In this document: one piece after another, positions 7,388-59,415 of the stretch
How the letters are laid out: each line of letters opens with the position of its first letter
Numbering within the stretch: position 1 is the first letter of the stretch
DNA from: Antechinus flavipes
Taxonomy: Eukaryota
Reading direction: 5' to 3'
DNA length: 64,000 nucleotides
NCBI RefSeq assembly: GCF_016432865.1
Contig: NC_067402.1
Coordinates: 299,460,001 to 299,524,000 of the forward strand
Made by a program: the position numbers and the translations under genes
The notes under the pieces: model-generated
The model's database searches: none
What the model saw: only the letters and a program-made list of their open reading frames with translations
Told to the model about the DNA's origin: nothing

Positions 7388-8014
7388 ATGGCTTCTTGTG
7401 TCCATACCTCCATAGGTGATCCTGAGAGACACAGAACCAAGATGTATAAGTTGGTGGTGATGGGCACCTGTTATGTGGGCAAGAGTGCACTGACCATGCA
7501 GTTTATTAAGAATCATTTTGTGACCGAGTATGACCCTACAATGCAAGATACCTACTGTAAGCAAACAGTAGTGGATGAAAAGCCGTGCCAGTTGCGCATA
7601 GTGGATACTGCAGGCACTGAAGAGTATTACCCTCTGAGGAATCATTCCATGCTCTGGGGAGGGGGCTTCCTCTTGGTCTATGCAGTGAATGACCTCCACT
7701 CTTTTGAGAATGTGAATGTTTTCTGGGACATTCTGCAGAGGCTCAAGGGCACCAACCCTATACCCATGGTGTTGGTGGCCAACAAAGTTGATGTGACCGA
7801 CAGGCTGGTGGACCCCACACAGGGCCAGGAGGTGGCCAGGAGCTTAGGGGTCCCTTATGTGGAGACATCAGCCAAGACTGGACAAGGTGTGGAGCAAGCC
7901 TTCCATGAGCTAGTGGGTGAAATTCGTAGGATCCGAGCTGAGGAGGAGCTCAAGAGACTCTCTAATACTGAGGAGAAGGAGGCCTGTGGGTGCAAATATT
8001 GCACAATCCAGTGA
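7388..8014 (+). CDS. Ras-like small GTPase copy 1 (208 aa; HRAS/ERAS-like, single coding exon, CaaX CTIQ)
   Basis: G1 GTCYVGKS, G2 YDPTMQDTY, G3 DTAGT, G4 NKVD, G5 ETSAK; C-terminus CGCKYCTIQ; 18-aa N-terminal extension. Collinear with HRAS without indels in the G domain. Confidence 0.93.
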   Translation: MASCVHTSIGDPERHRTKMYKLVVMGTCYVGKSALTMQFIKNHFVTEYDPTMQDTYCKQTVVDEKPCQLRIVDTAGTEEYYPLRNHSMLWGGGFLLVYAVNDLHSFENVNVFWDILQRLKGTNPIPMVLVANKVDVTDRLVDPTQGQEVARSLGVPYVETSAKTGQGVEQAFHELVGEIRRIRAEEELKRLSNTEEKEACGCKYCTIQ

Positions 8015-8346
8015 GCAGGTACACCCTTACCCTGATCCTGCCCCCAATTCCCCTCTCACCTGACCACGAAAACCTCCAAATTCCTTAGCCACTCCCCAGC
8101 CTTCAAGATCTTCATCTGCCTTTTGCCTGTTCTTCACTGCCAAGTCCTTGGGGATCTTATTGGGATTTCTCCAGGACCCTCTTGGAGGGTTAGGATACCC
8201 AGTTAAAAGTATCAAGAATTCTAAAGCTACCTGTGTGGCTTTGGGCAGGGGGGAACCTTGAATAGGAAGAACAATTCATTTTAAAGGGACTTCATTCACA
8301 CCTGGATTCAAAGTTGATTATTTTTATTTTTCTAGGATCTCTTATA

Positions 8347-8352
8347 AATAAA
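8347..8352 (+). terminator. Poly(A) signal of copy 1
   Basis: AATAAA followed by GT-rich gttgttggtttgtaagtgtgtttc; position conserved in all units. Confidence 0.65.
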
Positions 8353-8859
8353 GTTGTTGGTTTGTAAGTGTGTTTCTGGTAGTTTCTCCTGGGTTGTATG
8401 CTTGGGGTAGAAATCACATGAGGGCATTATAGCCTAGTGGAGAGAAAGCTGGGTTTGGGAGTGAGGAAGGCATGGGTGTTTTAGTTGTGAGACCTTGGGC
8501 TTCTGTTTTCTCACCAGTAAGAAATGGGGGAGAAGGGGAGAGTTATTCTAGACTCTCAGGTCCCTTTTAACTTTACCACTGGGATAGGTCTAAGTCTATG
8601 AAGCTCAGGTTAATGAGATGACAGTGATCCCTAGAAATAGTCTTATGTATCATCTGGCCATCATGTATCATAATATTTATCTCTGAATCTCTCATCTCTA
8701 TAGTAACTAATCATATCTCTTATTGTCATCTATCATTTATTGGAGATCAGTTCTATACTATCTATTAGCTCTCATCTTTTTATATAATTTTCATTTCTGT
8801 CTCTCCACACTCTTCCCCCACCTCATTTTTAATTTAACATAATCAAAAATACTCAAATT

Positions 8860-10900
8860 GCATTTCATAATGTTCTCTAATTCTTATTTGTCCAAAATTT
8901 CCTCCCTTCTCCAAATATCTAACAATGTAGACTATGCTTTGCTCTTTTAATTTGCCCATAATACCATCCTTTATGTCTAAATAACGAACCCATTTTGACC
9001 TTATGTTGGTGTAGGGTGTTTGAAGTTGGTCAAAGCCTAAGTTCTGCCTTAGTATTTTCCAATTCTCCTAGCAATTTTTCGTCAGATAACGAGCTTATCC
9101 CAGAAATGGGCATCTTTGGGTTTAATCAAATACTTGATCACTTAATCAGTCATTGACCATTGTGTCTTATATACTTAATCTATTCCAATTATTCTCTACT
9201 CTTAGTACACCAAATAATTCTGAAGACTGCCTCTTAATAAAGATGGGATTAGGTGTGGGATGGCTAGTCCACCTTCCTTTTTAGCATCCATTTTACAAGA
9301 TTTTGGATTCCCAAGTTTTTCCCTCCTTCCTTCCTCTCCCCTCTTCGGAAGAAGGGATGTAGTTTGATCTAGTTTATATGTGACCTATCATGTAAGACAA
9401 GATTCAACATCAGTCACAGTGTGAAACATCAAAAGGAAAAAGTGAAAAAAGAAAAAAAAGTGCTTCCATCTGCATCAGAGTCTGTCAGTTCCTTATCTGG
9501 ATATGGCTAGCATTTTCTTTCATGAGTTCTTTGCACTTGTCTAAGATCATTTTGTGGCTGAGAAGAGCAGAGTTTCTCATAGTTGATCATCATACAATGT
9601 TGCTGATGCTGTGCACAGTGTTTTCCTGGTTCTTCTCATTTCACTTTGTATCAGTTTGTACAAGTCTTTCCAGGTTTTTCTGAAATCTGCCTGTTCATTT
9701 CTTAGTGCACAATAATATTCCTTTATATTCCTATACCACAACTTATTCAGCCATTCCCCAATCGATGGGCTTCCCCTTAATTTCCAATATTTTGCCACCC
9801 CACAAAGGACTGATATAAATATTTTTGCATATCATATATATTTATGTATTTCTGTCCTTTCCTTTTTGTGTGATCTCTTGGGGATACAGACCTATCAGTG
9901 GTATTTCTGAGTCAAAGCGTACGCACAATTTTGTTGTCCTTTGGGCATATTTCCAAGTAACTCTGAGAATGGTTGGATCAGTTCAGGACTCCAACAATAC
10001 ATTAGGTGTTTCAATTTCCCCCATCATTTATCACTTTTTTGTATATCATATTGGGCCAATCTGATAGGTGTGAAGTGATATCTCAGAGTTGTTTTAATTT
10101 ATATTTAACTTCTTTTAAAACACTTCTTCATATGTCTAGAGATTGCTTTGACAGTTTCATTTGACAGCTACCTGCTCATATTCTTTGATTGGAGAATGAT
10201 TTTTATTTGGCTCATATTTCACCAAAGACACTTTTTTTGGAGGTACTTATTGTAAAGATTGTTTTCTGCTTTCTGCTTTCCTTCTAGTCTTAGTATCATT
10301 TGGTTTGGTTTGTGTAAAAGCTTTTCAAATTTAATTTAATCAAGATGATCTATTTTGCGTTTTGTAGTGTTCTCTCTATTTGATCAAAAATATTTCCTCT
10401 TCCCCTAAGTTTGATAGACTATTTTTTGCTCTTCTAATTTGCTTATCATCCCCTTTTATCTCTAAATCACGTAGCTCTTCAGCCTTATCTTGGTATAAAT
10501 TAAGACATACTGCTCTATACATACTTTGTGTCCAATGCCCCTCCCCACTCACCCTCCCCAGTTTTCCCAGTTTTGTCAAATAGTGAGTTCTTATCCCAGA
10601 AGAGTTTGGGTTTATCAAACAGTAGATTACTATAGTCTTTAGCTATTATACCTTATGTACCTAATTTCTTTCACTGATTCACTATTTCTTGGCCAGTACT
10701 AGATGGTTTTGATAGTTACTGCTTTATAATATAGTTTGAGATGTGATATTGCTAGACTACCTTCCTTTGTTATTTTGTCCCCTTTATTTTCCTTGATATT
10801 CTTAACCTTTTTTCTTCCAGATGAATTTTTTAAAAAAACTTTTCTTAGATATTTTTGATAGTTTGATGGACATGGCACTGAATAAGTAAATCAAATAAAA
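8860..10900 (-). mobile_element. L1 ORF2/3' fragments shared by array units
   Basis: Antisense ORF 9577-9798 (KYWKLRGSPSIGEWLNKLWY) matches the L1 ORF2 C-terminus. Homologous blocks at about 26920-28040 and 61240-63740. Confidence 0.7.
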
Positions 10901-13289
10901 TATATTTAAAATAAAAAATTAACATTATATATAATGGAGATAAATACATTTTTTCCTATAAATTCAGGGTGCAGCAGTGATGTTCATTGTCACCACTTCT
11001 GTTCGACATGGTATGAGAAATGTTGACTGGCACTAAGATGAAAAGAAATAACTATAATATGAGAATAATATAGGAATATTATATAGGAATCCAAGAATAT
11101 TCACAGTTATTACCTTTGCAGATGATATATTGATACCTAAAGAACTTAGATTCAAGTAAAAATTAATTGAAACAAAAATATCCACACAAATCATTGTCAT
11201 TATAAAAACCTCAGTAGGAAGATAGAAATGTCACTTACAATTACTATAAAATATATAAAGTACTTTGGAATTTCCCTACCAAGATTCCCTACCAAAAATT
11301 ATAAAAAATACAAATGCAAGTAACTGCTTATTTATACAACTAAATAAATAAATACAACTGCTCATGAAATTAAATAAAACAGTTTCTGGCAATGTGTACT
11401 TCAATGCAGAGTACAGTATTCATATTAACATTTTGTATTAGATACTAGTAGCGTCCCATAGTATCAATTGGGGGAGAGGGGTTATTACTGCTCTTGTTAG
11501 TTATTCCCATTACTCTGGGATTTGTGGGAGCCAATGAAACAAGAGTTGATCTGCATGGATCATTAGAGGGACTTCTCACTCACTGGTATAGGAGTTCACT
11601 TTACTACGAAAATCATGGATCTAGTTCTTGTACACATGCACACCCCCATTCTGAATGTTTTGCAATAATTATTTAAAATAATTCCTTGTAAAATTATTTA
11701 GCAAACACCAATTATTAACTTCTCTGGGCAAGACCCTTGGCTAGGCACAGTAGGGAGACATAAAAATGGATGAATCATACATTAGATTTACAGGAAACTT
11801 AGAGACTAAGAGAGAGAGTTTAAGTTGAGAAACTCTTGGCTATGGCTTCACACACAGCATAAGATTCTGTGAGGATCCCTCTCTGTCTCCTACGTGGTTC
11901 TCTGCCATCTTGTAGACCAGCGATCACTGAAAGGTACAGGGCCCCAAAAGCTTAATTTTGAACTGAACACTGGAAAAAGAGGATGGGATTTGGAATCAGT
12001 ATACCTGCATATAAGTATAATAGGGAGCTGTGTGTGTATTATCATCTGGCTCAGATTTTGAGCCATGGGATAATGGACTATGAGAATAGTAAGGAAGCTG
12101 ACTATATCAGGTGTGTAAAAGGGTGATATGGGAGCAAGGTTAGATGGCCTGTGAGTATATAATGTTTTTATTTCAGGTCCAGCTGCAACTACACAGAACA
12201 ATTTTTTTTTCCTAGAAGAGTTTCATTCGGTTGGCTTCTGTTATGCAAAAAAGAATTCCACAAGAAATTTAAAACAAAATAATAAACCCCAAAACTCTAG
12301 GGACTTTTAAAGCGATATTTGCTTTCAATTTAGATTATAATCTAACATTGAATAGTAGGCTAAGTTGCAATATGTAAAAAGGTTTATTTTATGCTGCTTG
12401 GAAAATAAATATGCATTAATAAAAAAATTATATTATTGGACTAGAAACAATAGTCAAGAACTATATCACAAGACTGCCTTTAAAACACATGATCAGATTA
12501 TACTGTACACACATGTAATTCTTTAGGACCGGTAAGTTCTTTCACACAACTTTTGATCATATTTTGAATTCTTTACACCATGCCAAGTTTTTAAGTAGCA
12601 AAATACAGATCATTCTTGTTTGACACACAATGCAATATTTCCTTTTACTTTAATTCTGGATATTTTAAAGTATTTTCTATAATTACATTATATGTATGCC
12701 TGTTCATCTTGGTGTCCGGTTCACTGGTCAAGGGCTTGGTTAGATTTATACTGTAGTATGTAGGAAATGGGTAGGAAATAGTGTGAATGTAAAATTGGAG
12801 ATCATGTGCTACAGAGGGTGGGAATTCTGAAGAAGCATATTACAACAAGGTGTTAACTCAGTGGAATTGATGAGATTGTGGTTCTTTAGTACACATATAT
12901 TTAGTACTTAGTATAGTGATGTAATGGTTCTGTAGTAAACACATTCAGTATACTGTAATGATGTAATTATAATAAGGTATTTAAGGGCTGAGAGGACTAG
13001 AAATGGGACATTCCATTTTTGACCAGCCTTGTGATGGCGTCCTGCCTTCATCACTTCTTCGCTAAGACCAAGGCTCAGGCTGATCTCAAAGTCCTCCAGA
13101 AAGCTAGCCTGACCATTACATTTTGGCACTGAAACGGGGCCATAAGGACCTATACTCAGTTTGAGGGATGAGATTTCAAGATCAGTGGAAAAGTCCCTGT
13201 GACCAGGAAATAGGGTGAGTAAACTAATCACTTTCATTTTTCAATTAAAATGGGGCAAAAAAAAAAAAAAGAGAGAGCCTTTCCCACCC

Positions 13290-15755
13290 TCCCAGGAAGA
13301 GAAGCCCAGCCCAAGGGCCCCAGGCAAAAAAAACAGATGGGCATGGTGGCAGCAGAGGTTACACCCAGAGAGTCTTTAGAAGTTCAGTACCCAGACATAA
13401 TTAATCCACCAAGAAGGAACCTGATGGGGGAAAGAAGTTACAATTGGGGAGAATAGAGTTGTATACAGTTGGGACTAATGAGATACCCCCTAGCGAGGTG
13501 AAATCTGTTCCTGTCTGGCCTTTGCCTCCAGCCTCATGGTGGCCCCTCTGCCTTCATCCTTTGCCTCCAGGCACAGTCAACTTGGCCATTTCACCTCCTG
13601 AGATGTAAAAAACAGTGTCCATCCATACACTGATATGGGAAACTGGAGAATGTGACACGAATATCCCAGTCACTAATGAAGGTAGGCAATGTGTGACTTA
13701 TCACCCAGGAGAAGTAGTAGCATCAGGTTTACTGATACAGAGTTCTAATAAGCACTCTGATGATAGTCGCCCAGATTCTGACTCCAGGCCAAAAAATCCA
13801 GGAATATACTGGACAGCAGCTGGGACAGCTGACCGACCTATGCTCACTATATAAATGGCACTCCATTAGAAGGATTGGTAGACACAGGCGTAGATCGTAC
13901 AGTCATTAGAGGTGCCAACTGGCCCAATCATTGGCCAAAGATTAAGGCAGACACATACATGTCTGACGTAGGAGGATCAATAGTGGCTGAAGTTAGTGCT
14001 ACCCCTTTGAGATGGACTTTTGAAGGTGAAACAGAAGTTTTTACTCTTTTTACAGTTGAAAAATCTCCATCAATCTGTGGGGAAGAGACATTTTACAACA
14101 ATTAGGGTTAAAAATGAGTACCTCGGTTTTTTAGGCAGGGCTGCTGTTGAAGTTCTTTTCCTATCCAATGGAAAACTGATGCACCAGTGGGGATAGAACA
14201 GTGGCCCTTAGGTAGCGATAAAATCCAGGCCTTATTAGATATAGTACAGGAGCAACTTGACCAATGACACTTAACAACCTTCTCTAAGTCCTTGGAATTC
14301 CCCAGTATTGGTTGTAAGAAAGAAATCTGGAAAATGGAGGATGTTGACTGATTTAAGAAAGGTAAATGAACATATGGAAACTATGGGGACTCTTCAGCCT
14401 GGACTTCCATCTCCTACTCAATTGCCTAGAAATGGCCTCTTTGGGTTATCGACATTAAGGATTGTTTCTATTCTATCCCTCTCGATAAAGAGGATACAAA
14501 AAGATTTGCCTTTTTAATACCTAGTGATAACTTAGCTGAGCCTTATAAAAGATATGAATAGATAGTTTCGCCACAGGAAATGAAAAATAGCCCTACTATG
14601 TGTCAAATATATGTTGCTACTGCTCTTACTCCATTAAGAAAAACATTTCCAAAAGTTATGTTACTACATTACATGGATGATATATTGGGATGTGCACCTG
14701 AGGAGCAAATATTAGAAGCATGTCTACAAAAGACCATAGAAACATTGAAGAACTACAAATTGTACATAATTCCAGAAAAAATTCAAAGACATGCTCCTTT
14801 TCAATATTTAGGATATGAAGAACACCCTAAGGTGCTTACAGTACAAAAACTGTCCTTAAGAACAGAGAAGTTGAACACCTTAAATGACTTTCAGAAATAG
14901 ATAGGAGATAGCCAATGGATGCGTCCAGTGTTAGGTTTGACTACCTATCAGTTACAACTATTACATGACATTTTAAGGGGAGACAATGCTTTAAACTCAC
15001 CACGCCAGGTTACAAAAGAAGCTCAAGAGGCTTTGAGAGAAGTTGAACTGGCTTTATCCAATGTGGTTGAAAAGAGTCACTCAAAACCCTTGGAAATATC
15101 AGTTTTTGTGACACAAGAGGCACCCACAGCAGTCCTTCATCAAGGAGACAGTGTGATAGAGTGGGTGAACCTCCCGGCACAACCAGAATGAAGCCTTACT
15201 CCTTACCCAGTGCTTGTGGCTAGAATTTTATTAAAGGCCATTAAGCGAGCAGTACAATTATCTGGGACAAGACCTGATAAGATATACACCTTTTACATCA
15301 ATACACAAATTAATGTGTGCTGTGAGACCATCCCAGAGTGGCAAATTTTATTGGCCATAGGTCCAAATTTTACACATGCGTCTCCATTAAAGATAACCAT
15401 ACTTTTACATAATTGGCGATGGATTCTTAAAGAGAAGGTTTCTAAAGTTTGTCTTAAAGGACCAACTATCTTTACAGATGCATCCAAACATAATATTTGT
15501 TCTGTATACTCTCGTGACTTAACTATAAAGAGACTAGTCAGAACTCCTTTTCAATCCACTCAGCAGAATGAGTTGTATGCAATCATTCTAGCTCTTACTT
15601 ATTATTCAGGAGACATAAATATAATATCTGATTTGGCCTATTCAGTAGGTGTGGTGCAAAGAATTGCCACAGCCCAGATAAAATTTGTAGCTTCCAATAT
15701 ATATCAGCTCTTTAAGGAACTTCAAGAGCAAGTGAGAAAGCATCCAGGTCAGATC
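13290..15755 (+). mobile_element. Decayed class II (betaretrovirus-like) ERV fragment: gag end, dUTPase-like remnant, protease, RT, RNase H
   Basis: Protease LVDTGVD (13875-); [23 protein letters not shown] and LHYMDDIL; RNase H IFTDASK...QQNELYAII...IISD. Multiple stops and frameshifts; truncated before integrase. Confidence 0.92.
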
Positions 15756-16589
15756 CATCCACTGGCATGTCAGGGTTAGGAGGGGTAAGACAGAGAGAAG
15801 AGCCAGGTATAGGAGGAAGTAGGCTAGGAAAAAATCGGGGAGTGATGTCACCCAATATGGGGAGGGCCCTTTGGCTTCCTTAGTTGCTACCTGAAAAATC
15901 ATAGTGAAAAGAGAAGGGAGGGGTGAGGGATACAACAAAGAGAGTGGGGAAGAACAGCAATCACAATCATTTTGTAATATTTGGATGGCCACGCCCCTTG
16001 CCTGAACCAACTTCTTGGTGGTCAATTATTGAAAAGTCCCCGACTTCTATGCCAGGATTTCATAAAGCAGGTGGTCTTATGAACCATTGAAACCAATATT
16101 GGCTGTTTTTGGATAAAAGATCTTGCGGTTTTATCTAAAAGAATAGCTTCTACAATTGTAAAAATGCTTCGTCATTTGTCCTTTCATCTCTGCCCTTAAA
16201 TAGGGAACCTCTTCTTATCTTGATAATAAATCTGACCAGTTACACTCTCCCTACCAGTTTCTTTTCTCCCTTGGCCGATTCCCTTCTTTCTCTTCTCTTC
16301 TCTTCCCTCTAAAATGCTTTCCTGCTCTTCCCCAAGTCCCTGCAGAATATTGTTATTTGACTGTGTACTTTAAACTGGCCTGAAAAGTTAGAGAAGCACC
16401 GAATCTTTATCCCAATTATCTGAATCTGCTCCATCTGACAAGTAGCACCGGTATCCTGGCCCATGACATTCTATATAGGAGGGGCAGGTCACAAACATGG
16501 TAAAAGGTATGGGAGATGTGGAACAGGAGAGAAGAAGGAGCTCGTGGAGGATGCTCTTAACTTATTTTTTCTGTAAAAACCAGGTATAA

Positions 16590-18683: not shown

Positions 18684-20820
18684 GCATTGATTAAAGACTT
18701 ACTGTGTGCCAGATGTATTAAGTGCCTGGGTAAAAATACAAATACAATAGGGTTTTTTTTTTTTACATTCAATCCCCATAGTCCTCTTTCAGGATATAGA
18801 AGATTCTCTCCATCAAAATTCTATGGAATTAGCCTGAATTATTGTTTATTGAAGAGAGTCAAGTGCATTGGAGTGGATCATCATATAATCTTATTTCTGT
18901 GCACAATTTTCTCTTGGTTTTACTCACTTCTTTTCGCATCAGTTCATAGAAGTCTTTCCAGGCTCAAGACGTTCTTTTTGTTATCACTCCTCCCTCCCCT
19001 CCCCTAGATGGCAGGTAGTCCAATACATGTTAAATATATTAAAGTATATGTTAAATCCAATATATGTGTACATAAATAGTCTTTAAAAGACTATTTATGA
19101 TTTCTGGGAAGAGAAAGACATGGGAGACTAGAAAGAAGTAGTGGGGAAGATAATGGGTGCTCTGAGCATGGTTTGGGTCAGAAGTAGAACCTGGAGAATG
19201 GGCTGTCTCTCCCCCCCCCTCCGCCCCAGCCTGGGAGAGAACTCCTCCTGATCCTCATCCAAATCCTCATGGGACAGCTGAAGAAACTGAGATAAACAAG
19301 GTCACACAGAGAGTGAGGTAGAAGTAGGACTAGAACTCAGTTCTTTTTCTTTTTTTAAAGAACACATTTACCTCCATCATTCTCTCTCCGGATGCTGACA
19401 GTACTTTTCGTTTCAAGTTTATTGGAATTGCCTTGAATTTCTCCATTGTTGAAAATAGCCAAATCCATCACACAATCTTTTTTTTTTCCTGATGCAATTA
19501 GGATTAAGTGACTTGCCCAGGGTCACACAGCTGGGACATGTTAAGTGTCTGATGTCAGATTTGAACTCCGGAGCTCCTGACTTCAGTGTTCCAGCACCAT
19601 GGGGGAAGAACATCTCCCTCCCCCAAGCTACCTTCCTTCCTGCTTCCTTCCCTTGTCAGTTCTCAGGTCCCACTCTCCTCCTTCAGCTCACTAACGCCGG
19701 GCTCCTCTCCCCATTCCTGGTCCCCGGAGGTCCCAAGGGCGCTCTCTGCCCTCTGCCCTCTCTCGTCTGACTCTGACCCTGCCCCCCTCCTTCTCTCCTA
19801 CCTGGGCTGTTATTACACCTGCTGGGGGGGAGGGGAGGGGCCGCAGTGGTCTGTCTCTCTGAAGTCTCCCTCCTCCCCAGGTCACCTCTGACCTTTCTGA
19901 ACCTCAGGTCTGAGCCTCCCACCGCCCTGTTCAATCAACCGCACAGACTGTTCCCTTCAGGAGAAAATATCCGATAAGGATCCCCCTCACTAAGGGCCAG
20001 ACACTGCGCCAGTGCCTTATAAATACTGGCTTTTCTGATCCTCACGACCACCCTAGGAGGTACTTGCTTTTTATTATTCCCATTTTCCACATGAGGAGAC
20101 TGAGGCAAACAGCAAAAGTGACTCGCTCAGGATCACCGCAGAGGTCGGATCTGCATTCTAGTCTTCCCGAGTCCGGGCTCAACAAAAGGCTCTTTGCTCG
20201 GACTTAGCAGCAAAATGACAGGTAGGACTATCAAGTCGCATGGCCAGGCGCTCTGCGGCATTTGCCAGTATCTTTATCTTCCTTCAGAAGAAAACGGGGA
20301 CTGGTTTGAGCTGAGCCATGGACGGTGGGTGGGAAACGCCTGCCTTGCTCTGCAAGACCCCCTGGACTTGGGCTATATGTCCAGAAGACCACCTCGTTGG
20401 GTTTACAAAAAGTTCCCAGTATTGTTTAACAACACAAAGCTGGAAAACTGTACAACTTTGTTCCTGTTGGGGGGGGGGTCGTCTCTTTGGCTTTTAAAGC
20501 TCCTTATGACCTAGCTCCTCTCTCACTTTTCAGTCTTATCTCAGCTTTCTTCCCACCCCCCCAACTCCGTAATTCTCTGATGCAGTGAAAATGGCCCCTT
20601 GCTGTTCCTGGTACATCACACTCTGCCTCCAGGCTCCTGGCCTTCTGTAGTAGCGGTGCCCCGTGGCCAGAATGCCCTCCCTCCCATATCCCCCTCTGTT
20701 TCTCTGGCTCCTTCAAGTTGCCGGGAAACCCGACCTCCTGCAAGAAGCCTTTCCTATCCTCCTCAACCTAAAGTTTCTCTTCTGAAATCCCAGCTAATTC
20801 ATCCTGCATTTATTTCTCAT
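18684..20820 (+). repeat. Block C, copy 1 (paralogous to about 50160-53145)
   Basis: 19590-20820 is nearly identical to 51950-53145; 19080-19585 is a more diverged match to 50270-50745. Confidence 0.85.
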
Positions 20821-24647: not shown

Positions 24648-24652
24648 TTCTC

Positions 24653-35905: not shown

Positions 35906-35910
35906 TTCTC

Positions 35911-43400: not shown

Positions 43401-43735
43401 TTGCTGCTGATTCAGAAAGGGAACAGCTTGGAAGAGGAAGCATCATGAATAATTACACTGAAACCAATGGGGGATAAACCTGAGAACTTCATTCCTGACA
43501 GGAGAAGGCTGTAATACTCTAGAATAGACAAGGTTTGGAAAATGGAAAGCATTTTTGGCAGAAATTAGGTTTAGAAAAATTTACATCCAAGATATTCCTG
43601 AGCGCTGTCCCAGATATCAATGTGTGAGCAAGGTCAAATAAAGGGAACGGATACATTACCTAGGACAGAAAGCAACTTCTGAATATTTCTCTCTTATGCC
43701 TTCTTTGCCCACAAATTATAGCCAGACATTGTTGA
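40495..43735. repeat. Block B, longest copy, upstream of copy 4
   Basis: Homologous to 15756-16140 and 31560-34440. Confidence 0.85.
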
Positions 43736-45787: not shown

Positions 45788-45845
45788 TTCTCATGACTTC
45801 TTGTGTCCATACCTCCATAGGTGATCCAGACAACGCAGAACCAAG

Positions 45846-46418: not shown

Positions 46419-47134
46419 GCAGGTACACCCTTACCCCGATCCTGCCCCCTAATTGCCCTCTCACCTGGCCAAGAATACCCTAAAATCCCCTAGCCACTCC
46501 CCAGTCTTCAAGACCTTCATCTGGACCCTTCCTTCTTCCTGCTCTTCACTGCCAAGCCTTTTGGGACCTTATCAGGATTTCTCCAGGAGCCTCTTGGAGG
46601 GACCCGTCTATGTTTCTCCATTAGGGACTTTTTGGATTTTTGCTTTTGTTTCCCATTTTGAGCAGGAATGATTTCCTCGCTGCCTGGGTATCCTGACCAG
46701 GCAAGAAAAGACTCCATTCCAACTTGGGTGCTCAGCCTCTCCCCGCCTCTTTGACTGCCAGAGCCCCCAAAGACAGCCAGCTCCCTGGAAGCTCTCTCTG
46801 TAGTCTGGCCTCTTCCTCTACCTTCCTGGAGGCTGTGTGTGAATTTTCTTTATTAGGCTTTCCCCTGCTCCCCCAACAGAGACCCTGCCTCTGGAAACGA
46901 GGGCACAAATGATTCTCCCTCCTGCCCTGAGCTTGGTGTATTTGCTGTCTGGCACTAAGTCACCACCCCTGTTGAGGCCCAGAATTCTTTTTTGGATGAT
47001 GGTGAGCAGCCTTGCTCTGAAGTGGTCCCCATTCAGTAACTCTCAACACCAGACGAGAGGAATATAGGGTTCTTTTTTTGTTGTGTTACATTTCATGTGC
47101 ATTTTTGTTCTCAATTTGCATATCATCTGGAGCT

Positions 47135-47295
47135 CTTTGTTTCGTTTGTTTGTTTTTCTGAGGTAATTGGAGTTAAGGGACTTGCCCAGAATCACACTGC
47201 TGGGAAGTGTTATAAGTGTCTTAGACCTGATTCGAACTCTGGACTTACTGCCTTGGGGGCTGGTGCTCTAGCCATTGTGCCATTTACCTAACTCT
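47135..47295 (-). mobile_element. SINE in 3' UTR of copy 4
   Basis: Antisense SINE inserted at catctggagc; same site is occupied in copy 5 and empty in copies 2 and 3. Confidence 0.75.
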
Positions 47296-47741
47296 GGGGC
47301 AGTTTCCAAAGCAGTGAGGGGTTGGGATGGAATGGGGCTTTCTCCTACTAGGAGGCATTAAAATTATAATTTGTTTTAGCAGCCAGATAAAATCCCTTTG
47401 AACCTTGCAAATTTCAGTATTTTAATTGCCTCCAAGAGAAGTGGAGTGGAGGGGCCTGGCTGTAAATGTTCTGAGCAGATACCTCACAGCTGCAGGTCAG
47501 GTGGGGGTCTGCTTAGGAGCCTTCTGACAGGGGCATCTTTGTATTACCTCAGGAGTTCTGGCGAAAAGGGCAGTGGATGATTCTCCTGTTTCAGTTAAAA
47601 GTGTTAAGGATTCTAAAACTACCCATCTGACTTTTTTTTGGGGGGGGGATAGTGGAGTTTGAGTAGGAAGAGGTATTCATTATAAAGTGACTTTCTATAC
47701 ACTTGGATCCAAAGTTGATTGTTTTTCTATTATTTCTTACA

Positions 47742-47747
47742 AGTAAA
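47742..47747 (+). terminator. Variant poly(A) signal AGTAAA of copy 4
   Basis: Position homologous to AATAAA in the other four units. Confidence 0.5.
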
Positions 47748-48629
47748 AGTTGTTGTTTTGTTTATACGTGTGTTTCTGGTAGTTTCTCATGCGTTGATAT
47801 GCTTGGGGTATCTAAGGTACCTGAGGGCAGTATGGCCTAGTGGAGAGAGAGAGCTGGGTTTGGGAGTGAGGCAGGCAGGGTGTTTTAGCTGTGGGACTTT
47901 GGTCTTCACTTTTTTCACCAGTTAGATGTGGGGGAGGAGAAGGGGATCGTTGGTCTAGATTCTCAGGTTCCTCTTAACTCTATCACTGGAGTGGGTCTAA
48001 GTATCATCTGGCCATCATGTACCATAATATTTATGTCTGAATCTGTAATCTCTATATTACCTAATCATCTCTATTAAGTCATCTACCATTTATTAGAGAT
48101 CAATTCTATATCATCTATTATCTCAGATCTTTTTATGTAGTTGTCATTTCTTCCTCAACACTTTCCCCCCACCTCATTTTTAACAATCAAAAATACTCAT
48201 TTTGCAGTTCATAATGTTCTCTAATTCTTCTTTGTCCAAAATTTCCTTCTTCTCCGAAGATGTGACAAGATAAATTATTACCTTGCTAGTTTGCCTATAA
48301 TATTTCCCTTTATGTCTAAATTGTGAACCCATTTTGACTTTATGTTGTCGTAGGGTGTTAAATGTCAGTCAATGCCTAGGTTCTGCCGTAGTATTTTCCA
48401 ATTTTCCTAGCAATTTTTGTCAAATAGAGAGCTCTTGTCCCAAAAATTGGAGTCTTTTTAGGTTTAATTAAATACTCGATTGTTATATTTACTGACTACT
48501 GTGTCTTGTATACTATGTATATATATATATGTATGTATATAAAAGTATAATATATATACACTTGTATACTTTTATACTTAACCTATCCTACTAGTCAGTA
48601 CCCCAAATGATTTTGATGACTGCCTCTTT

Positions 48630-49500: not shown

Positions 49501-50759
49501 AAACATTCGTTTTACAAGGTTTTGAATTCCCAAGTTTTCTCCCTCCTTCCTTCCTCTCCCCTCTTCTGAAGAGGAGATGCAGTTTGATCTTGTGTAAGGC
49601 ACAATTCAACATTAGTCACAGTGTGAAAGAGGAACATGATCCAAAGGAAATAATGAAAAAAGAAAAAACAATGTTTCCATCTGCATTCAGAGTCCGTCAG
49701 TTCTGTATTTTTCAAAATTATCAAGCGAGTACAAGCACTTAGAAATACTAAGATATTTGGTTACAAAAACCACCCCATTGGGGCTGGCTCTTCTGCTGAG
49801 CGGCTGTCCAGACCAGGCCTCCTTCCTGGGGCGATGTGACCTTAGAGGCCTGTAATCCCCCCTGGTGGGGCTGACTGGTACTGAGAGAGGAGAGAGAGTC
49901 AGGGAGCAAGTGATAGATCCCTCCGGGAGAGAGTCTAACTCGGAAGACTTCAGGAAATAATGGTCTGCGCTGCCTTCTGCCCTGGAAGTACTCCATGCAT
50001 GAACTTGCACATATTTGCGAAATTATTTGAAGTAGATTATGAACAGAGAATTCTTTATGGACACGTTAAATATGTTTACTTTTAAATAAATAAAAGAATA
50101 GCTTCTGCAATTGGAAAAGTGCTTATTCTTTTTCCCTTTCATCTCTGCCCTTGAATGGGGCGCGGAAGCGACAGTGATGGGGAAAGGAGGGAAGGGAAAT
50201 AGGCATTGATTGGGGACTCACTGTGTGCCGGGTGTAGAAGCGCAGGGTCCAAATACAAACACTGTAACCGTCTTTAAAAGACTCTTCACGATTTCTGGGA
50301 AGAGAGACAGGGGGTGGGGGCTAGAAGGAAGTCGTGGGGAAGGCGGTGGGGCTCTGGGCATAACGGGCTGTCCCCGCCCCCTCCCCCCAGCCTGGGAGAG
50401 AACTCCTCCCGATCCTCAGCCAGACCCTCGTGGGAAGGAACCGAGGGAAACAAGTCACACAGAGAGCGAGGTAGCAGCAGGACTAGAACTCGGCTCTTTT
50501 TCTTTTTTAAGGTAAAAATATTAGGGTTTGATCCACATTCAGTCTCCGTCGCTCTCTCTCCGGATGCCGACGGCACTTTCCGTTACAAGTTTATCCGAAC
50601 TGCCCTGAATCTCCCCATTGCTGAAAATGGCCAAGTCCGCCACGCCTGATACAATTGGGGTTAAGTGACTTGCCCGGGGTCACTCCGCTGGGACGAGTTA
50701 AGTGTCCGAGGCCAGATTTGAACTCGGGAGCTCCTGACTTCGGGGCTGGGGCTCTAACC

Positions 50760-51945
50760 ACTGGGCCGCCCACCTGCTCCCCCCCCCCCATAATCTTGCA
50801 GCTGCGGGCGGGGCTCTCCTGGTTCTCCCTGCCCTCAGCGCGAGTCCCAAGTCTCCGCAGGCTTCTCTGCGATCAGCCTGCTCAGCGTTTCTCCTAGACT
50901 CCTAATACTCTGTCCTGTCCCGCTCACGCGCCGCCGCTGGGCCGCCGAGCCCGGGATGGCGCCGCGCGGGCGCCCGCAGAGCTTCTTTTGCCCGAGGGCG
51001 GCGGGAGGCGGGATTGGCCGAGAGCTCCCGGCCCTTTCTCCCCATTTCAAAGAGCCTCTTTCTGACTCTTCCCCTGCAACGGCGCCGCTCAGTGGCCGCG
51101 CTTTGCATTGCGTCCTCACTTTTCCGGGGTTAGATTCCTTCCTTCCCTCGGGCCGTCGGGGAGGGGGAGGGGCCGCGGCGGCGCAGGCTCAGAGGGGCGG
51201 CCGCGGCGGCGCAGGCTCAGAGGGGCGGCCGCGGCGGCGCAGGCTCAGAGGGGCGGCCGCGGCGGCGCAGGCTCAGAGGGGCGGCCGCGGCGGCGGCGCA
51301 GGCTCAGAGGGGCGGCCGCGGCGGCGCAGGCTCAGAGGGGCGGCCGCGGCGGCGCAGGCTCAGAGGGGCGGCCGCGGCGGCGCAGGCTCAGAGGGGCGGC
51401 CGCGGCGGCGCAGGCTCAGAGGGGCGGCCGCGGCGGCGCAGGCTCAGAGGGGCGGCCGCGGCGGCGCAGGCTCAGAGGGGCGGCCGCGGCGGCGGCGCAG
51501 GCTCAGAGGGGCGGCCGCGGCGGCGCAGGCTCAGAGGGGCGGCCGCGGCGGCGCAGGCTCAGAGGGGCGGCCGCGGCGGCGCAGGCTCAGAGGGGCGGCC
51601 GCGGCGGCGCAGGCTCAGAGGGGCGGCCGCGGCGGCGCAGGCTCAGAGGGGCGGCCGCGGCGGCGCAGGCTCAGAGGGGCGGCCGCGGCGGCGCAGGCTC
51701 AGAGGGGCGGCCGCGGCGGCGCAGGCTCAGAGGGGCGGCCGCGGCGGCGCAGGCTCAGAGGGGCGGCCGCGGCTCCTTGTAGGACTCAGGCAGAGCGAGC
51801 GGATGGGGAGCCGCAAGCCTCCGCTTCGTTCGCGACCACTCCTGTCCTCCTCCAGCCTCTCTTTTGTCTGCCCCCGCCTCCCCTCCCCTGCCTGTTTCTG
51901 TGTAATCCTTTCTCCGTACAAATGGAGAATCTCGGTTTGAAAGGG
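50760..51945. promoter_or_regulatory. CpG-island-like segment containing the minisatellite
   Basis: Very high CpG density relative to the AT-rich flanks. The associated gene, if any, is not identified. Confidence 0.55.
51170..51772 (+). repeat. GC-rich minisatellite, 28-bp unit gcggcggcgcaggctcagaggggcggcc, about 21 copies
   Basis: Near-perfect tandem units; two 31-bp variants with an extra GGC (about 51288 and 51483). One NotI site per unit. Confidence 0.95.
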
Positions 51946-53159
51946 GCTCCAGCACCACGGGGGAAGAACGTCTCCCTCCCCCAAGCTTCCTTCCCTTGTC
52001 AGTTGTCGGGTCCCACTCTCCTCCTTCAGCTCACTAACGCCGGGCTCCTCTCCCCGTTCCCGGCGCCCCGGAGGTCCCAAGGTCGCTCTCTGCCCTCTGC
52101 CCTCTCTCCTCTGACTCTGACCCTGCCCCCCTCCTTCTCTCCTACCTGGGCTGTTATTACACCTGCTGGGGGGTGGGGGGCACAGTGGTCTGTCTCTCTG
52201 AAGTCTCCCTCCTCCCCAGGTCACCTCTGACCTTTCTGAACCTCAGGTCTGAGCCTCCCACCGCCCTGTTCAATCAACCGCACAGACTGTTCCCTTCAGG
52301 AGAAAATATCCGATAAGGATCCCCCTCACTAAGGGCCAGACACTGCGCCAGTGCCTTATAAATACTGGCTTTTCTGATCCTCACAACCACCCTAGGAGGT
52401 ACTTGCTTTTTATTATTCCCATTTTCCACATGAGGAAACTGAGGCAAACAGCAAAAGTGACTCGCTCAGGATCACCGCAGAGGTCGGATCTGCATTCTAG
52501 TCTTCCCGAGTCCGGGCTCAACAAAAGGCTCTTTGCTCGGACTTAGCAGCAAAATGACAGGCGGGACTATCAAGTCGCATGGCCAGGCGCTCTGGGGCAA
52601 TTGCCAGTATCTTTATCTTCCTTCAGAAAGAAACGGGGACTGGTTTGAGCTGAGCCATGGACGGTGGGTGAGAAACGCTTGCCCTGCTCTGCAAGACCCC
52701 CTGGACTTGGGCTATATGTCCAGAAGACCACCTCGTTGGGTTTACAAAAAGTTCCCAGTATTGTTTAATAACATAGAGCTGGAAAACTACAACTTTGTTC
52801 CTGTTTGGGGGGGGGGGTCGTCTCTTTGGCTTTTAAAGCTCCTTATGACCTAGCTCCTCTCTCACTTTTCAGTCTTATCTCAGCCTTCTTCCCCCCCCCC
52901 AACTCCGTAATTCTCTGATGCAGTGAAAATGGCCCCTTGCTGTTCCTGTACATCACACTCTGCCTCCAGGCTCCTGGCCTTCTGTAGTAGCTGTGCCCTG
53001 TGGCCAGAATGCCCTCCCTCCCATACCCCCTCTGTTTCTCTGGCTCCTTCAAGTTGTAGGGGAGTCCGACCTCCTGCAAGAAGCCTTTCCTATCCTCCTC
53101 AACCTAAAGCTTCTCTTCTGAAATCCCAGCTAATTCATCCCGTTTTCTCATGCCGTCAA

Positions 53160-55959: not shown

Positions 55960-56965
55960 TTAAGTAACTTTTTATTGATAGAACCAATGCCAGGGTAATT
56001 TTTTACAGCATTATCCCTTGCATTCACTTCTATTCTGATCCCCCCGCCCCACCGCCTCTCCTAGATGGCAAGCAGTCCTTTACATGTTGAATAGGTTACA
56101 GTATATCCTAGATAATATGTGTGCAGAACTGAACAGTTTTCTTGTTGCACAGGGAGAATTGAATTCAGAAGGTAGAAATAACCCAGGAAGAAAAACAAAA
56201 ATGCAAGCAGTTTATATTCATTTCCCAGTGTTCTTTCTTTGGGTGTAGTTGCTTCTGTCCATCTTTGATCAATTAAAGCTCTCTTTATTAAAGAGATCCA
56301 CTTCCATCAGAATACAGCCTCAAACAGTATCGTTGTTGAGGTATATAATGATCTCCTGGTTCTACTCGTTTCACTTATCATCAGTTCATGTAAATCTCGC
56401 AGTCCTCTCTGTATTCATCCTGCTGGTCATTCCTTACAGAACAATAATATTCCATAACATTCATGTACAGCAATTTACTCAACCATTCTCCAATGGATGG
56501 GCATCCTTTCATTTTCCAGCTTCTAGCCACTACAAACAGGGCTGCCACAAACATTTTGGCACATACAGGTCCCTTTCCCTTCTTTAGTATCTCTTTGACA
56601 TATAAGCCCCGTAGAGACACTGCTGGATCAAAGGGTATACACAGTTTGATAACTTTTTGAGCATAGTTCCAAATCGCTCTCCAGAATGGCTGGATGTGTT
56701 CACAATTCCACCAACAATGTATCAGTGTCCCTGTTTTCCCACATCCCCTCCAACATTCCACATTATCTTTCCCTGTCACTCTAGCCAATATGACAGGTGT
56801 GTAGTGGTATCTCAGAGTTGTTTTAATTTGCATTTCTCTGATTAGTAATGACTTGGAGCATCTTTTCATATGGCTAGAAATAGTTTCAATTTCTTCATCT
56901 GAGAACTGTCTGTTTATATCCTTTGACCATTTATCAATTGGAGAATAACTTGATTTCTTATAACT
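55960..56965 (-). mobile_element. L1 3' end (ORF2 C-terminal cysteine-rich region plus 3' UTR)
   Basis: Antisense ORF 56381-57001 encodes IREMQIKTTLRYHYTP...CWRGCGKTGTLIHCWW, a hallmark of L1 ORF2. Confidence 0.92.
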
Positions 56966-58107
56966 AAATAGCTTTGTGCTCATGCAGCTATATACCTGCA
57001 CAAGGCAAAGTGAATGTAAAGGAGTTAGAGTGAATGATCTCTATGTTTTATGAGCCTTAAAGTTCTATACAAATGTCTGTTGTTATCGTTGTTGCCGTCA
57101 TTGTCGTCATTACCCAATCCAAAATTCTGTGAAATGACATGATGGATCTCACAGCTCTTTCAGACCCTCAAAGTAATAAAATAACCGTGAGGGTATCACT
57201 TGCACATTTTTATTCTCCAGGTTTGTTTTCCAATCTAAAGCAAAGGCCAAACAAGTCTTGCTCTGGAGTTCTGAGGAAGGACCCACTCAAAGAGGTTTGG
57301 CACGGGCCAGGAAAACAACGTGAAACAAGTCTGCCTGAAGTTTAAGGAGATCGGAAAACAAGCTGAAAGTGGGGAGGGACTGCGGACTCGCAGGCGGCTG
57401 TGGCTGCAAGGAAAAGGCGAGGTTGCCCAGAGTCATTCTGGGGAAGGATGGAGGGAACAATGAAATTTGGAGGTGCAAACAGAAAGAGGAGTGACCATGA
57501 GGAGTTCCGGGAATGAGTGGGGTTTAAAGTGCGGATTAGGCAAAGGAAAGCCAGAGTGACAAAGCCTGCTTTTTTCCCCTTGGGCCTGCAGGACGGAGGA
57601 CTTTAGCACGCACTATCTTTTGGTGCAGAAGCACTGGCTCTTGGACCTTCCTGCTTACCTCAGAATCTCAGGGGCAGAATTACCCTGGCCCCAGGCTACA
57701 TCGTGGGGCTGGGGCCAATAACGCTTGTGGTACTTGTAGGGCTTCCCCGAACTCCTAAGGGTGGGGTGTCCTGAGCTCCCAAAACACGGCCACGCGGGAT
57801 GCTCAAAGCTCGGTCAAGGGTAGGCTAGCGTTCCCTGAGGTGCTTGCAGTGAGGGGTGGGGCTCCCCAAATCCTTTGGGGGTGGAGCTTTCAAAATGAAG
57901 TAAATTACTCCCATCCCGAAAGAGTGGGCGTGTGGTTCCGGGGAGTCTTTGTTGCATAGGGGCGGGGTTCTCCAAATCACCTGGGGTTCTCACAAGCCCT
58001 GGCAGTACGCAGGAGGGGGGCCTCTACTTCTCTGCTTCTGAGGAGTTCCGCCCTTAAAGACTAGATCTGAATGCGAACTGAAGAGGTAACTTTACAGTTC
58101 CGAAAGG

Positions 58108-58783
58108 GTATGTAGAGGCCAGCTCTCAGTTAACAGCAATGGGGTGGGTGGCAAGTAGACCCCAAGTTAGTGCCATCTTGGACTGCATTAATGCGGGAGG
58201 CATTGATCGAGCTCGGCTCCTCATGGGGCCGGATTAGTGCGGGCAGTGCCGCTGGGCTCGCCTCCCCTGTCCCCAGCTTAGCTACCCGAGCCCACACACT
58301 TTAGGTTGTATCATTGCAGGTTCAGATGGGGGAGCCCAGTTTGCAGCCAAGCCAGCCAGAGACTCTCGGCACCTTCGATGCAGGAGCTGCAGACCCTGCA
58401 GCTGCCCAAGCCCAACCCATTTGGGCTACGTTACTGTGGAGGCGCATGGCTTGCAGACATAGTTAGCACTATTCTTGCCTCCTAAGATCCTTCCGAATTG
58501 ACCCCGGGGTCTTCTGGGTCCCGGGGTTTGAGAAGGGCCCCAGTAAATAAGAGAGTTGTCCTGGAGAGGTCAGCCAGAATAGAAGGGCCTGGAGCCCACA
58601 TGTTCTAATGGGTTTGGAATTGGCCAGAAGAGCCAGGGGATTCAGAGATTTCCCGTATCTAAAGTTCTGTCACTGAGGCTGGAGGCAGGAGGAAAGTTTT
58701 CCTTCTGGAAGGTGACCTCCTGTGTAATGGGCTGATTTCTTGCAGCCTGTAAAGTGATTAGATTCCACTTAAGCCCTTTTCAG
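58108..58783 (+). other. Predicted 5' UTR intron of copy 5
   Basis: AGG|GTATGT donor; cccttttcAG|ttctcATG acceptor. Confidence 0.55.
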
Positions 58784-58788
58784 TTCTC

Positions 58789-59415
58789 ATGGCTTCTTGT
58801 GCCCATACCTCCATAGGTGATCCAGACAGAAGCAGAACCAAGATGTATAAGTTGGTGGTGATGGGTGCCTGTTGTGTGGGCAAGACTGCACTGACCATTC
58901 AGTTTACTGAGAATCATTTTGTGACTGAGTATGACCCCACCATCCAAGATTCCTACCTTATGCACTCAGTGGTAGATGAAGAGCCGTGCCATCTGGACAT
59001 CGTGGATACCACGGGCAATGAACAGTTTTACCCTCTGAGGAACCAGAACGCACGCTGGGGAGAGGGCTTCCTCTTGGTCTATGCAGTGAATGACCCCCAC
59101 TCTTTTCAGAATGTGAATTTCTTTTGGCACTATCTGCGGAGAGTCAAGGGCACTGACCGTCTACCCGTGGTGTTGGTGGCCAACAAAGTCGACTTGTCCG
59201 ACAGACTAGTGGACCCCACATTGGGCCAGGAGGTGGCCAGGAGATTTGGAGTCCCTTATGTGGAGACATCAGCCAAGACTGAACATGGTGTGGAGCAAGC
59301 CTTCCATGAGCTGGTTCGTGAAATTCGGAGGCTGCGAGCTGAGGAGGAGCTCAAGAGTCACCCCAATACTGAGCAGAGGGAGGCCTGTAGGTGCAAGTGT
59401 TGCACAATCCAGTGA
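58789..59415 (+). CDS. Ras-like GTPase copy 5 (208 aa, CaaX CTIQ)
   Basis: G1 GACCVGKT, G2 YDPTIQDSY, G3 DTTGN, NKVD, ETSAK; C-terminus CRCKCCTIQ. Confidence 0.93.
   Translation: MASCAHTSIGDPDRSRTKMYKLVVMGACCVGKTALTIQFTENHFVTEYDPTIQDSYLMHSVVDEEPCHLDIVDTTGNEQFYPLRNQNARWGEGFLLVYAVNDPHSFQNVNFFWHYLRRVKGTDRLPVVLVANKVDLSDRLVDPTLGQEVARRFGVPYVETSAKTEHGVEQAFHELVREIRRLRAEEELKSHPNTEQREACRCKCCTIQ

Follow-up and report, generated by a model that had tools for sequence, protein, structure and literature searches.

Always-on atypical GTPases are an established functional class. ERAS is constitutively active without mutation, bearing the residues found in activated Ras mutants (PMC3729207), and its HRAS-like, single-exon gene was formerly listed as the processed pseudogene HRasp (PMC3729207, PMC8834437). 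RhoH and the Rnd proteins, both GTPase-deficient, are under the control of transcription or phosphorylation (PMC2565660). Serine or threonine at position 59 occurs naturally in ARL6, DIRAS1/2, RAB40A-C, RASD1/2, and RND1-3 (Johnson et al., bioRxiv 10.1101/2021.06.23.449327), and most of these natural Ser/Thr59 proteins (RND1-3, RASD1/2, and DIRAS1/2) are atypical. Here, we analyze a 64,000-nucleotide stretch of the genome of the yellow-footed antechinus, Antechinus flavipes (NCBI RefSeq assembly GCF_016432865.1, contig NC_067402.1, positions 299,460,001 to 299,524,000 of the forward strand; hereafter the window), which carries five intronless Ras genes, numbered copies 1 to 5. All five belong to Clade A of MgRas (marsupial gonad Ras), a family of single-exon genes specific to marsupials, and they are real, fast-evolving coding genes. 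We propose that MgRas proteins are rather likely to be non-cycling, loaded with guanosine triphosphate (GTP), and independent of GTPase-activating proteins (GAPs) as well as of guanine nucleotide exchange factors (GEFs), with an output set by transcription, lipid anchoring, and turnover.

The gene family is not new, as it was published as MgRas by Petrohilos et al., Mol Biol Evol 2026 (PMC12866920); a full-text literature search for MgRas together with "marsupial" returned just that paper and its preprint. MgRas genes are described there as single-exon open reading frames (ORFs) of the Ras subfamily, which form a marsupial-only clade that is split into the subclades A, B, and C. The yellow-footed antechinus has 23 of them, and Clade A is much expanded in dasyurids. 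One tandem gene cluster is located near DLC1/TRMT9B and another, restricted to dasyurids, on chromosome 5 near GRAMD4; both are near chromosome ends. Expression is almost entirely limited to the gonads and yolk sac. Marsupials have no ERAS, which was also not found in the devil (PMC12866920). The terms G12, G13, Q61, hydrolysis, P-loop, GAP, and "activating" have zero occurrences in the text of the paper, and "codon 12" is used once, in the introduction, for human RAS (PMC12866920). The presence of germline residues of the activated type in MgRas appears to be unreported.

The ORF listing of the whole window contains five continuous Ras ORFs of 190-240 amino acids, all on the + strand, and a tblastn search of the window with copy 5 as the query found these five and none further. 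Each has a single uninterrupted coding exon, a RAS domain, and at least four of the five G boxes, the properties by which MgRas genes were delimited (PMC12866920). All copies match the Pfam profile PF00071 over its full 162 positions (E 1e-45 to 3e-47), and the proteins are ~75% identical to each other. Among the best 120 of 214 database matches, the close homologs are all marsupial: many paralogs with 65-90% identity come from Antechinus, Sminthopsis, and Sarcophilus, and one to three genes each, with 54-63% identity, from opossums, Dromiciops, wombat, koala, possum, glider, and bilby. In a maximum-likelihood tree the MgRas proteins are monophyletic (stem 0.79, support 100), with invertebrate Ras and eutherian Ras-like retrocopies falling outside. 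The nearest relative of copy 1 is the protein P0023 (support 98), and copy 4 has no well-supported ortholog in the tree. The solved structures closest to the copies are those of HRAS, KRAS, and NRAS, with the alignment reaching into the HRAS-like cysteine-rich tail. An AlphaFold2 model of copy 5 (mb094fb2088cc), computed with the family alignment as input, has a mean predicted local distance difference test score of 85.8, with most of the G domain above 90. Its top Foldseek matches are crystal structures of KRAS, NRAS, and HRAS, with template modeling scores of 0.96-0.98 and root-mean-square deviations of 0.7-1.0 Å.

In Ras proteins, Gln61 places the attacking water, and any side chain at residue 12 clashes with the arginine finger of GAPs specific to Ras (RasGAPs). 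Hydrolysis decreases and nucleotide exchange increases when position 13 or 59 is substituted. At positions 12/13 and 59-61 in HRAS numbering, copy 1 has Cys/Tyr and Ala-Gly-Thr, copy 2 Gly/Ser and Thr-Gly-Thr, copy 3 Cys/Cys and Thr-Gly-Thr, copy 4 Gly/Ser and Thr-Asp-Ile, and copy 5 Cys/Cys and Thr-Gly-Asn. These residues had been listed in an earlier sequence-only reading of the window, and both the alignment and the codons bear them out; in copy 1, codons 12-13 read TGT TAT and codons 59-61 read GCA GGC ACT. That reading also held that K16, F28, T35, D57, N116/K117/D119, and S145-A146-K147 are retained, as they are in all five aligned copies. Its offset of 16 residues relative to HRAS is valid for copies 1, 2, 3 (counted from the ATG at 35911), and 5, but not for copy 4, the ORF of which starts at the methionine of the MYKL motif. 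The interval that it assigned to the feature begins at the first base of codon 12 of copy 1 (7469) and ends 2 nucleotides beyond codon 61 of copy 5 (59021). The complete set of G boxes, namely GxxxxGK[S/T] of G1, Thr35 of G2, DxxG of G3, NKxD of G4, and SAK of G5, is present in copies 1, 2, 3, and 5, whereas G3 of copy 4 is broken to DTTD by the change G60D, which removes the DxxG glycine.

The unusual residues extend to the whole family, for which we aligned a non-redundant set of 49 MgRas proteins covering 12 marsupial species. None of them has Gln61, which is replaced by Thr (16 proteins), Ile (11), Asn (10), Ser (4), or by Val, Met, Ala, Leu, Asp, Gly, or Arg. Gly12 is found in five proteins and Gly13 in three, and the two never occur together (0/49). 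The replacements include Cys (24), Ser (11), and Phe (6) at position 12, and Cys (27), Ser (12), and Tyr (3) at position 13. Cysteine is the commonest residue at both positions, and many Clade A members have a vicinal Cys-Cys pair by the γ-phosphate site. Position 59 is occupied by Ser or Thr in 43 of the 49 proteins and by Thr in 40. Altogether, 47 proteins depart from the canonical residue at no fewer than three of positions 12, 13, 59, and 61. In contrast, G10, K16, D57, N116, K117, D119, S145, and A146 are invariant, and F28, T35, and G15 are each present in 48 proteins. It is this contrast, between invariant nucleotide-binding residues and changeable positions 61 and 12, that goes beyond chance. 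Switch I residues Y32, P34, T35, D38, and Y40 are conserved across the family, and G60 is absent from seven proteins. A tryptophan replaces Thr74 in 44 of 48 MgRas proteins. The absence of Q61 and G13 from every window copy, stressed by the sequence-only reading, is one inherited state and not five events, because the 49 marsupial relatives lack Q61 as well. The hotspot state is common to American and Australian marsupials and therefore predates the marsupial crown radiation.

For each of 164 G-domain sites, we counted the fewest residue changes required on the maximum-likelihood family tree. Independent changes number 21 at position 61 (rank 1 of 164), 18 at position 12 (rank 2), and 14 at position 13 (rank 15), compared with a median of 6. 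Switch II averages 9.1 changes per site, helix α3 8.2, switch I 5.6, and the rest of the domain 5.5; switch II and helix α3, which form the regulator-contact surface, thus have ~1.5 times as many changes per site as the remaining domain. This surface is variable only across the whole family tree, as no acceleration of switch II and helix α3 was found between orthologs (Fisher p = 0.31). The positions that are the most constrained and the most oncogenic in canonical Ras rank among the freest in MgRas, and the residues that contact the nucleotide never change. Catalysis does not require a particular residue at positions 61, 12, or 13. The pattern fits a protein that would need to bind nucleotide but not to hydrolyze it.

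The hotspot residues behave differently between paralogs and between orthologs. When all pairs of the five copies are pooled, which makes the counts non-independent, codons 11-13 have 18 nonsynonymous and 4 synonymous differences. Between orthologs, codons 11-13 have 0 nonsynonymous differences, the P-loop (codons 10-17) has a single one, T17S, with a ratio of nonsynonymous to synonymous divergence (dN/dS, or omega) of 0.06, and position 61 is usually the same. Copy 5 and its devil ortholog P0002, for example, are 90% identical and have the Ala-Cys-Cys P-loop and Asn61 in common. The odd residues vary from paralog to paralog yet tend to stay within a paralog, which, with these small numbers, is a hint of possible paralog-specific function.

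The non-cycling, GTP-loaded reading is the best supported one, because each MgRas protein joins at least two, and usually three to four, hydrolysis lesions with intact nucleotide-binding motifs. Our results cover the residues, the way they are conserved, the constraint on the ORFs, and a fold prediction; the nucleotide state, the insensitivity to GAPs and GEFs, and the mode of regulation are inferred. The G domain would keep its fold and bind guanine nucleotide and magnesium through the GxxxxGK[S/T] lysine, F28, T35, D57, NKxD, and SAK. In the absence of Gln61 the attacking water would not be positioned, and side chains at positions 12 and/or 13 would obstruct the RasGAP arginine finger. Thr59 would lower hydrolysis and raise intrinsic exchange, as in KRAS, where A59T inhibits hydrolysis, promotes intrinsic exchange, and leads to autophosphorylation (Johnson et al., bioRxiv 10.1101/2021.06.23.449327). 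The proteins would thus be expected to load GTP spontaneously and stay loaded, independently of SOS-type GEFs and arginine-finger GAPs; KRAS A59T is likewise desensitized to SOS1 (bioRxiv 10.1101/2021.06.23.449327). Activity would then be set by the time and place of transcription, by the lipid anchor formed by the cysteine-rich tail and CAAX box, and by protein turnover. The published gonad-restricted expression fits such control by expression (PMC12866920). The sequence-only reading had proposed that the family binds GTP and escapes RasGAPs. The invariant motifs, the loss of Q61 and of the Gly12-Gly13 pair from all 49 proteins, and the predicted Ras fold support this proposal at the level of sequence, and a protein that binds nucleotide and is not switched off by an arginine-finger RasGAP would be the most economical reading. 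Regulation by copy number, which the sequence-only reading also suggested, is conjectural; gonad expression was published for only 4 of 23 antechinus genes (PMC12866920).

Among the known systems, ERAS is similar to MgRas in its single exon, N-terminal extension, CAAX tail, and restricted expression, in the case of ERAS in stem cells or reproductive tissue. Unlike MgRas, it is one eutherian-specific gene, whereas MgRas genes form large tandem families and additionally lack Gln61 and Ala59. ERAS and MgRas are separate monophyletic clades in the published phylogeny, the one tree on which the orthology statement is based (PMC12866920). Rnd1-3 and RhoH share with MgRas germline substitutions at the equivalents of Ras positions 12, 59, and 61, the trait of atypical GTPases to which the 47 MgRas proteins with at least three non-canonical hotspot positions conform; Rnd and RhoH are GTPase-deficient, have no GEF/GAP cycle, and are also regulated by localization. 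The Ser or Thr59 of 43 MgRas proteins is natural in RND1-3, RASD1/2, and DIRAS1/2 as well. However, Rnd, RhoH, RASD, and DIRAS belong to other subfamilies (Rho or other Ras branches) and are conserved single genes with fixed residues, whereas residues 12, 13, and 61 differ among MgRas paralogs.

Viral v-H-Ras and v-K-Ras combine a change of residue 12 with A59T (G12R or G12S plus A59T), a parallel to MgRas, and Cys12 of MgRas corresponds to G12C. Viral and oncogenic RAS proteins have one or two changes and keep Gln61 and the native switch II, whereas MgRas differs from HRAS at ~45% of residues, including most of switch II and W74. Oncogenic behavior of MgRas cannot be assumed. The comparison of Cys12 with the oncogenic G12C allele, drawn in the sequence-only reading, was overstated in view of Thr59 in 40 of 49 proteins and the rebuilt switch II with W74. 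A GTP-locked state need not mean a protein that activates mitogen-activated protein kinase signaling or is transforming, because RAF may bind differently or not at all to a protein with Thr59, Trp74, and a rebuilt switch II. The parallel with Rap1 that was drawn from Thr61 fails as a statement of membership: Thr61 is present in three of the five copies and 16 of the 49 proteins, and position 61 is the most variable site of the family, whereas Rap1 keeps Gly12, Gly13, and an invariant Thr61. A Rap-type GTPase was rejected on these grounds, that is, the limited occurrence of Thr61, the 21 changes at position 61, and the missing Gly12-Gly13 pair. A canonical cycling Ras of the H/K/N-Ras type was rejected on the absence of Q61 from the five copies and the 49 relatives, and of G12 together with G13 from all 49.

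The MgRas family is under purifying selection, which is much weaker than that on canonical Ras. Nei-Gojobori estimates for the five copies are dN 0.11-0.15, dS 0.23-0.30, and dN/dS 0.41-0.60. The upstream flanks served as the neutral baseline, as the downstream flank of copy 1 gave a non-homologous alignment (Jukes-Cantor distance ~0.9) and the units differ there by insertions. Upstream-flank divergence is 0.15-0.20, above the dN of the paralogs. Mismatches occur in the flanks at 0.143 per bp and gap openings at 0.015 per bp, and simulation at the flank substitution and indel rates gives a neutral ORF survival of 0.004-0.007 per copy; the G domains are open in all five copies. Six orthologous loci were compared. 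The four intact ortholog pairs have dN/dS of 0.30-0.60, and their dS of 0.14-0.18 is equal to the intergenic divergence of the same loci (0.14-0.18). In three of the four clean pairs dN is lower than dS with Fisher p of 3e-4 to 7e-4, and in the fourth p = 0.11. Three gap-free Clade-A pairs (antechinus against devil or dunnart) pooled have omega 0.39 at dS ~0.17, and the pooled ortholog test, with the pair L001(-)/L002(-) and its pseudogene included, gives omega 0.49 and p = 8.5e-10. Gap columns make up ~5% of the intergenic alignment of the ortholog loci, and the ORFs have no frame-breaking indel. Single paralogs have 1:1 orthologs across Antechinus, Sarcophilus, and Sminthopsis in the tree, for example copy 5 with P0002 and copy 2 with P0025, and the paralogs are therefore older than the divergence of the three dasyurid genera. 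A processed pseudogene was ruled out as a description of the copies by the dN/dS of 0.3-0.6 and the neutral ORF survival of ~0.005 per copy; copy 2, with its 3' 1-bp deletion, is a partial exception.

The family also loses genes. In copy 2, a DNA alignment places a 1-bp deletion at ~25255/25256, which shifts the frame ~9 codons ahead of the normal stop and eliminates the cysteine-rich tail and CAAX box; the devil ortholog P0025 still ends in CCTIQ. Copy 4 has lost the 18-residue N-terminal extension, as the upstream ATG and frame are destroyed. Copies 2 and 4 may thus be partly disabled. The hypervariable region of copy 3 has a 12-bp in-frame deletion. A devil MgRas gene of Clade C type (L001, 4591-5144, - strand) is a pseudogene that is out of frame from about codon 107 and has internal stops, and its antechinus ortholog (L002, 4675-5235, - strand) is an intact ORF of 186 residues with a CAAX box. 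The MgRas family undergoes birth-and-death turnover that includes lineage-specific gene death.

Several observations weigh against a non-cycling, GTP-loaded MgRas. Its nucleotide state, hydrolysis, and sensitivity to GAPs and GEFs would be extrapolated from mutants of HRAS and KRAS to a background that differs by ~45%. The dN/dS, at 0.4-0.5, is high by the standards of Ras proteins, and the tail frameshift of copy 2, the G60D change and N-terminal loss of copy 4, and the devil pseudogene indicate that some copies may be dying. Gonad expression was reported for only 4 of the 23 antechinus MgRas genes (PMC12866920). The conservation of the ortholog P-loop (omega 0.06) may reflect a specific role of positions 12 and 13 outside the non-cycling model. 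Some of the seven proteins that lack G60 may not sense the γ-phosphate, so that "always on" could be "no switch". Part of this evidence, namely a dN/dS that reaches 0.6, the frameshift that removes the CAAX box of copy 2, the lost upstream ATG and G60D of copy 4, the frameshifted devil paralog, and expression undetected for most antechinus copies (PMC12866920), is also what speaks for a decaying array, in which non-functional relics of processed genes were spread by segmental duplication and the oddities at positions 12, 13, 59, and 61 are products of decay. We regard this explanation as very improbable, given that dN is significantly below dS and also below flank divergence, that five G domains are open against a neutral survival of ~0.005 per copy, and that the ORFs lack frame-breaking indels where ~5% of intergenic columns are gaps. 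Moreover, eight nucleotide-binding residues are invariant in 49 of 49 proteins, single paralogs are kept as 1:1 orthologs in three genera, and the losses of Q61, G12, and G13 are older than the marsupial radiation, with the ORFs still present. Wholesale pseudogene decay is unlikely, and individual copies such as 2 and 4 may be heading that way.

MgRas proteins might instead still cycle, provided that a GAP supplies the catalytic residue in trans, as with Rap1, either through an asparagine thumb of the RapGAP type or as a dedicated marsupial GAP. Rap1GAP needs no cis-glutamine and tolerates Rap G12V; Rap-like Thr61 in three window copies and 16 family members, and the well-conserved switch I, point in the same direction. 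Nevertheless, cycling of this kind appears unlikely, as Thr61 is not conserved at the most changeable position of the domain (21 events), the Gly12-Gly13 pair of Rap is absent from all 49 proteins, and the regulator-contact switch II and helix α3 change ~1.5 times as much per site as the rest. To our knowledge, no candidate GAP for MgRas has been named. A third possibility is a signaling-inert binder or decoy, which would hold nucleotide without activating classical effectors, owing to Thr59, the altered switch II, and in some members the loss of G60, and which would damp Ras signaling in germ cells by sequestering effectors, regulators, or membrane sites. KRAS A59T does not bind the Ras-binding domain (RBD) of C-RAF and binds RASSF5 weakly (bioRxiv 10.1101/2021.06.23.449327), and some Ras-subfamily proteins, such as NKIRAS and DIRAS3, act as suppressors (PMC12866920). 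The conserved switch I (Y32, P34, T35, D38, and Y40), however, argues for retained binding of effectors of the RBD or RA type, and ERAS, the closest functional precedent, signals actively via PI3K. We consider a decoy doubtful for the family as a whole; an inhibitory role would be most plausible for copy 2, which has no membrane anchor, and for the seven of 49 members without the DxxG glycine. More speculatively, the non-cycling state might have been elaborated further: beyond a simple release from constraint, hotspot codons 12, 13, and 61 would have diversified after each duplication and then been fixed in each paralog, and Thr59 would provide an alternative, hydrolysis-independent chemistry of autophosphorylation and self-driven exchange. 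In marsupial germ cells, MgRas would then form a naturally occurring, selected set of non-cycling Ras proteins that differ by degrees in their nucleotide and effector properties, and reproductive conflict may have been the driving force; we hold this extension only as a tentative idea.

Table 1. Positions of the MgRas copies, their hotspot codons and duplication units, and other features of the window.
Feature	Position	Strand	Details
MgRas copy 1	7388-8014	+	208 aa, CAAX = CTIQ, Pfam Ras 5.8e-47
Copy 1 codons	Cys12 7469-7471, Tyr13 7472-7474, Ala59 7610-7612, Thr61 7616-7618	+	codon reading
MgRas copy 2	24653-25375	+	240 aa; ORF and Pfam Ras
Copy 2 codons	Gly12 24734-24736, then Ser13; Thr59 24875-24877, Thr61 24881-24883	+	
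MgRas copy 3	35911-36525	+	204 aa, counted from the ATG that is homologous to those of the other copies; mechanical ORF extends upstream to 35569
Copy 3 codons	Cys12 35992-35994, then Cys13; Thr59 36133-36135, Thr61 36139-36141	+	
MgRas copy 4	45846-46418	+	190 aa; ORF begins at the MYKL Met
Copy 4 codons	Gly12 45873-45875, then Ser13; Thr59 46014-46016, Asp60, Ile61 46020-46022	+	
MgRas copy 5	58789-59415	+	208 aa; ORF and Pfam Ras
Copy 5 codons	Cys12 58870-58872, then Cys13; Thr59 59011-59013, Asn61 59017-59019	+	
Duplication unit of copy 1	5713-11537	+	self-blastn
Homologous duplication units	~23519-28679 (copy 2), 34517-38528 (copy 3), 43948-48514 (copy 4), 56965-63731 (copy 5)		self-blastn
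Splice-acceptor-like site	7424-7441 (copy 1)		directly upstream of the MYKL Met; present at the equivalent place in each copy
~2.9-kb intergenic segment	31573-34476 and 40826-43726		between copies 2/3 and 3/4, 83.7% identity; ORFs without Pfam match
Fragments of the ~2.9-kb segment	16136-16595, 49769-50160		
Youngest repeat pair	19590-20804 / 51948-53140		1.2 kb, 94.7% identity
Minisatellite	51171-51773		GC-rich 28-bp unit, 21.3 copies, 97% match, within a 66% GC block
LTR/ERV pol fragment	15210-15779	+	ORF with retroviral-type RNase H (PF00075, E 1.6e-6)
LINE-1-like ORF	56381-57001	-	resembles C-terminal LINE-1 ORF2 by eye; no Pfam match
ORFs taken as non-coding	31830-32519, 41323-41769, 33698-34117, 40635-41165, 50956-52230, 23050-23628		no Pfam match

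The DNA of the window is mammalian in character, with patchy GC content and debris of long interspersed nuclear elements (LINEs) and endogenous retroviruses (ERVs), the latter including a pol fragment with long terminal repeat (LTR) affinity (Table 1). Besides the ORF, each Ras duplication unit takes in ~1.6 kb of upstream sequence and 3 kb or more of downstream sequence, and the units have a DNA identity of 75-85%. The ~2.9-kb intergenic segment probably belongs to a larger, ancestral unit of duplication. The youngest repeat pair of the window is far more similar in sequence than the Ras units, and its second copy adjoins the minisatellite, which leaves several frames spuriously open over long stretches (50956-52230 among others). 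The splice-acceptor-like sites are pyrimidine-rich and end in CCTCCATAG, followed by GT. NCBI models of the MgRas family come in two forms, of 186-190 and 208 residues, and the 18-residue N-terminal extension may be 5' untranslated region or intron in some transcripts.

The five copies lie in a tandem cluster of Antechinus flavipes that is sub-telomeric, and further paralogs are located on the same contig, CM028221.1 (GCA_016432865.2), at 299.33-299.45 Mb of 300.48 Mb. At the antechinus locus, a P0082-like gene of Clade C type is positioned head-to-head with a Clade A gene. In the devil and antechinus loci L001/L002 and L003/L004, the Clade C-type gene (-) and the Clade A gene (+) are ~5.5 kb apart, and both the spacing and the orientation of the pair are conserved between the two species. 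The side-by-side placement of Clade A and Clade C-type genes in both species fits the published Cluster 2. The region between the head-to-head genes could be a bidirectional promoter.

The genes themselves were known. Our analysis would place MgRas among always-on atypical GTPases, indicates that the trait is universal in the family and ancient and that its hotspots are among the fastest-evolving sites, and provides the first, small-scale, dN/dS estimates for the family, which the MgRas paper left as future work (PMC12866920). Dozens of residue combinations that nature tolerates at positions 12, 13, 59, and 61 offer Ras biochemistry ready material for comparison. The published account treats the genes as proto-oncogene-like targets that await an activating mutation, with the hypothesis that more copies bring a higher chance of such a mutation (PMC12866920); the germline copies, however, already carry residues of the activated type. 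If all MgRas proteins were hydrolysis-dead, cancer risk in dasyurids would lie in mis-expression of pre-activated paralogs outside the gonad and not in point mutation. Marsupials would then represent a second, independent mammalian recruitment of single-exon, always-on Ras for reproductive and early-embryonic tissue, after eutherian ERAS, and on a far larger scale: dasyurids have 14-23 copies, and a bandicoot has over 100.

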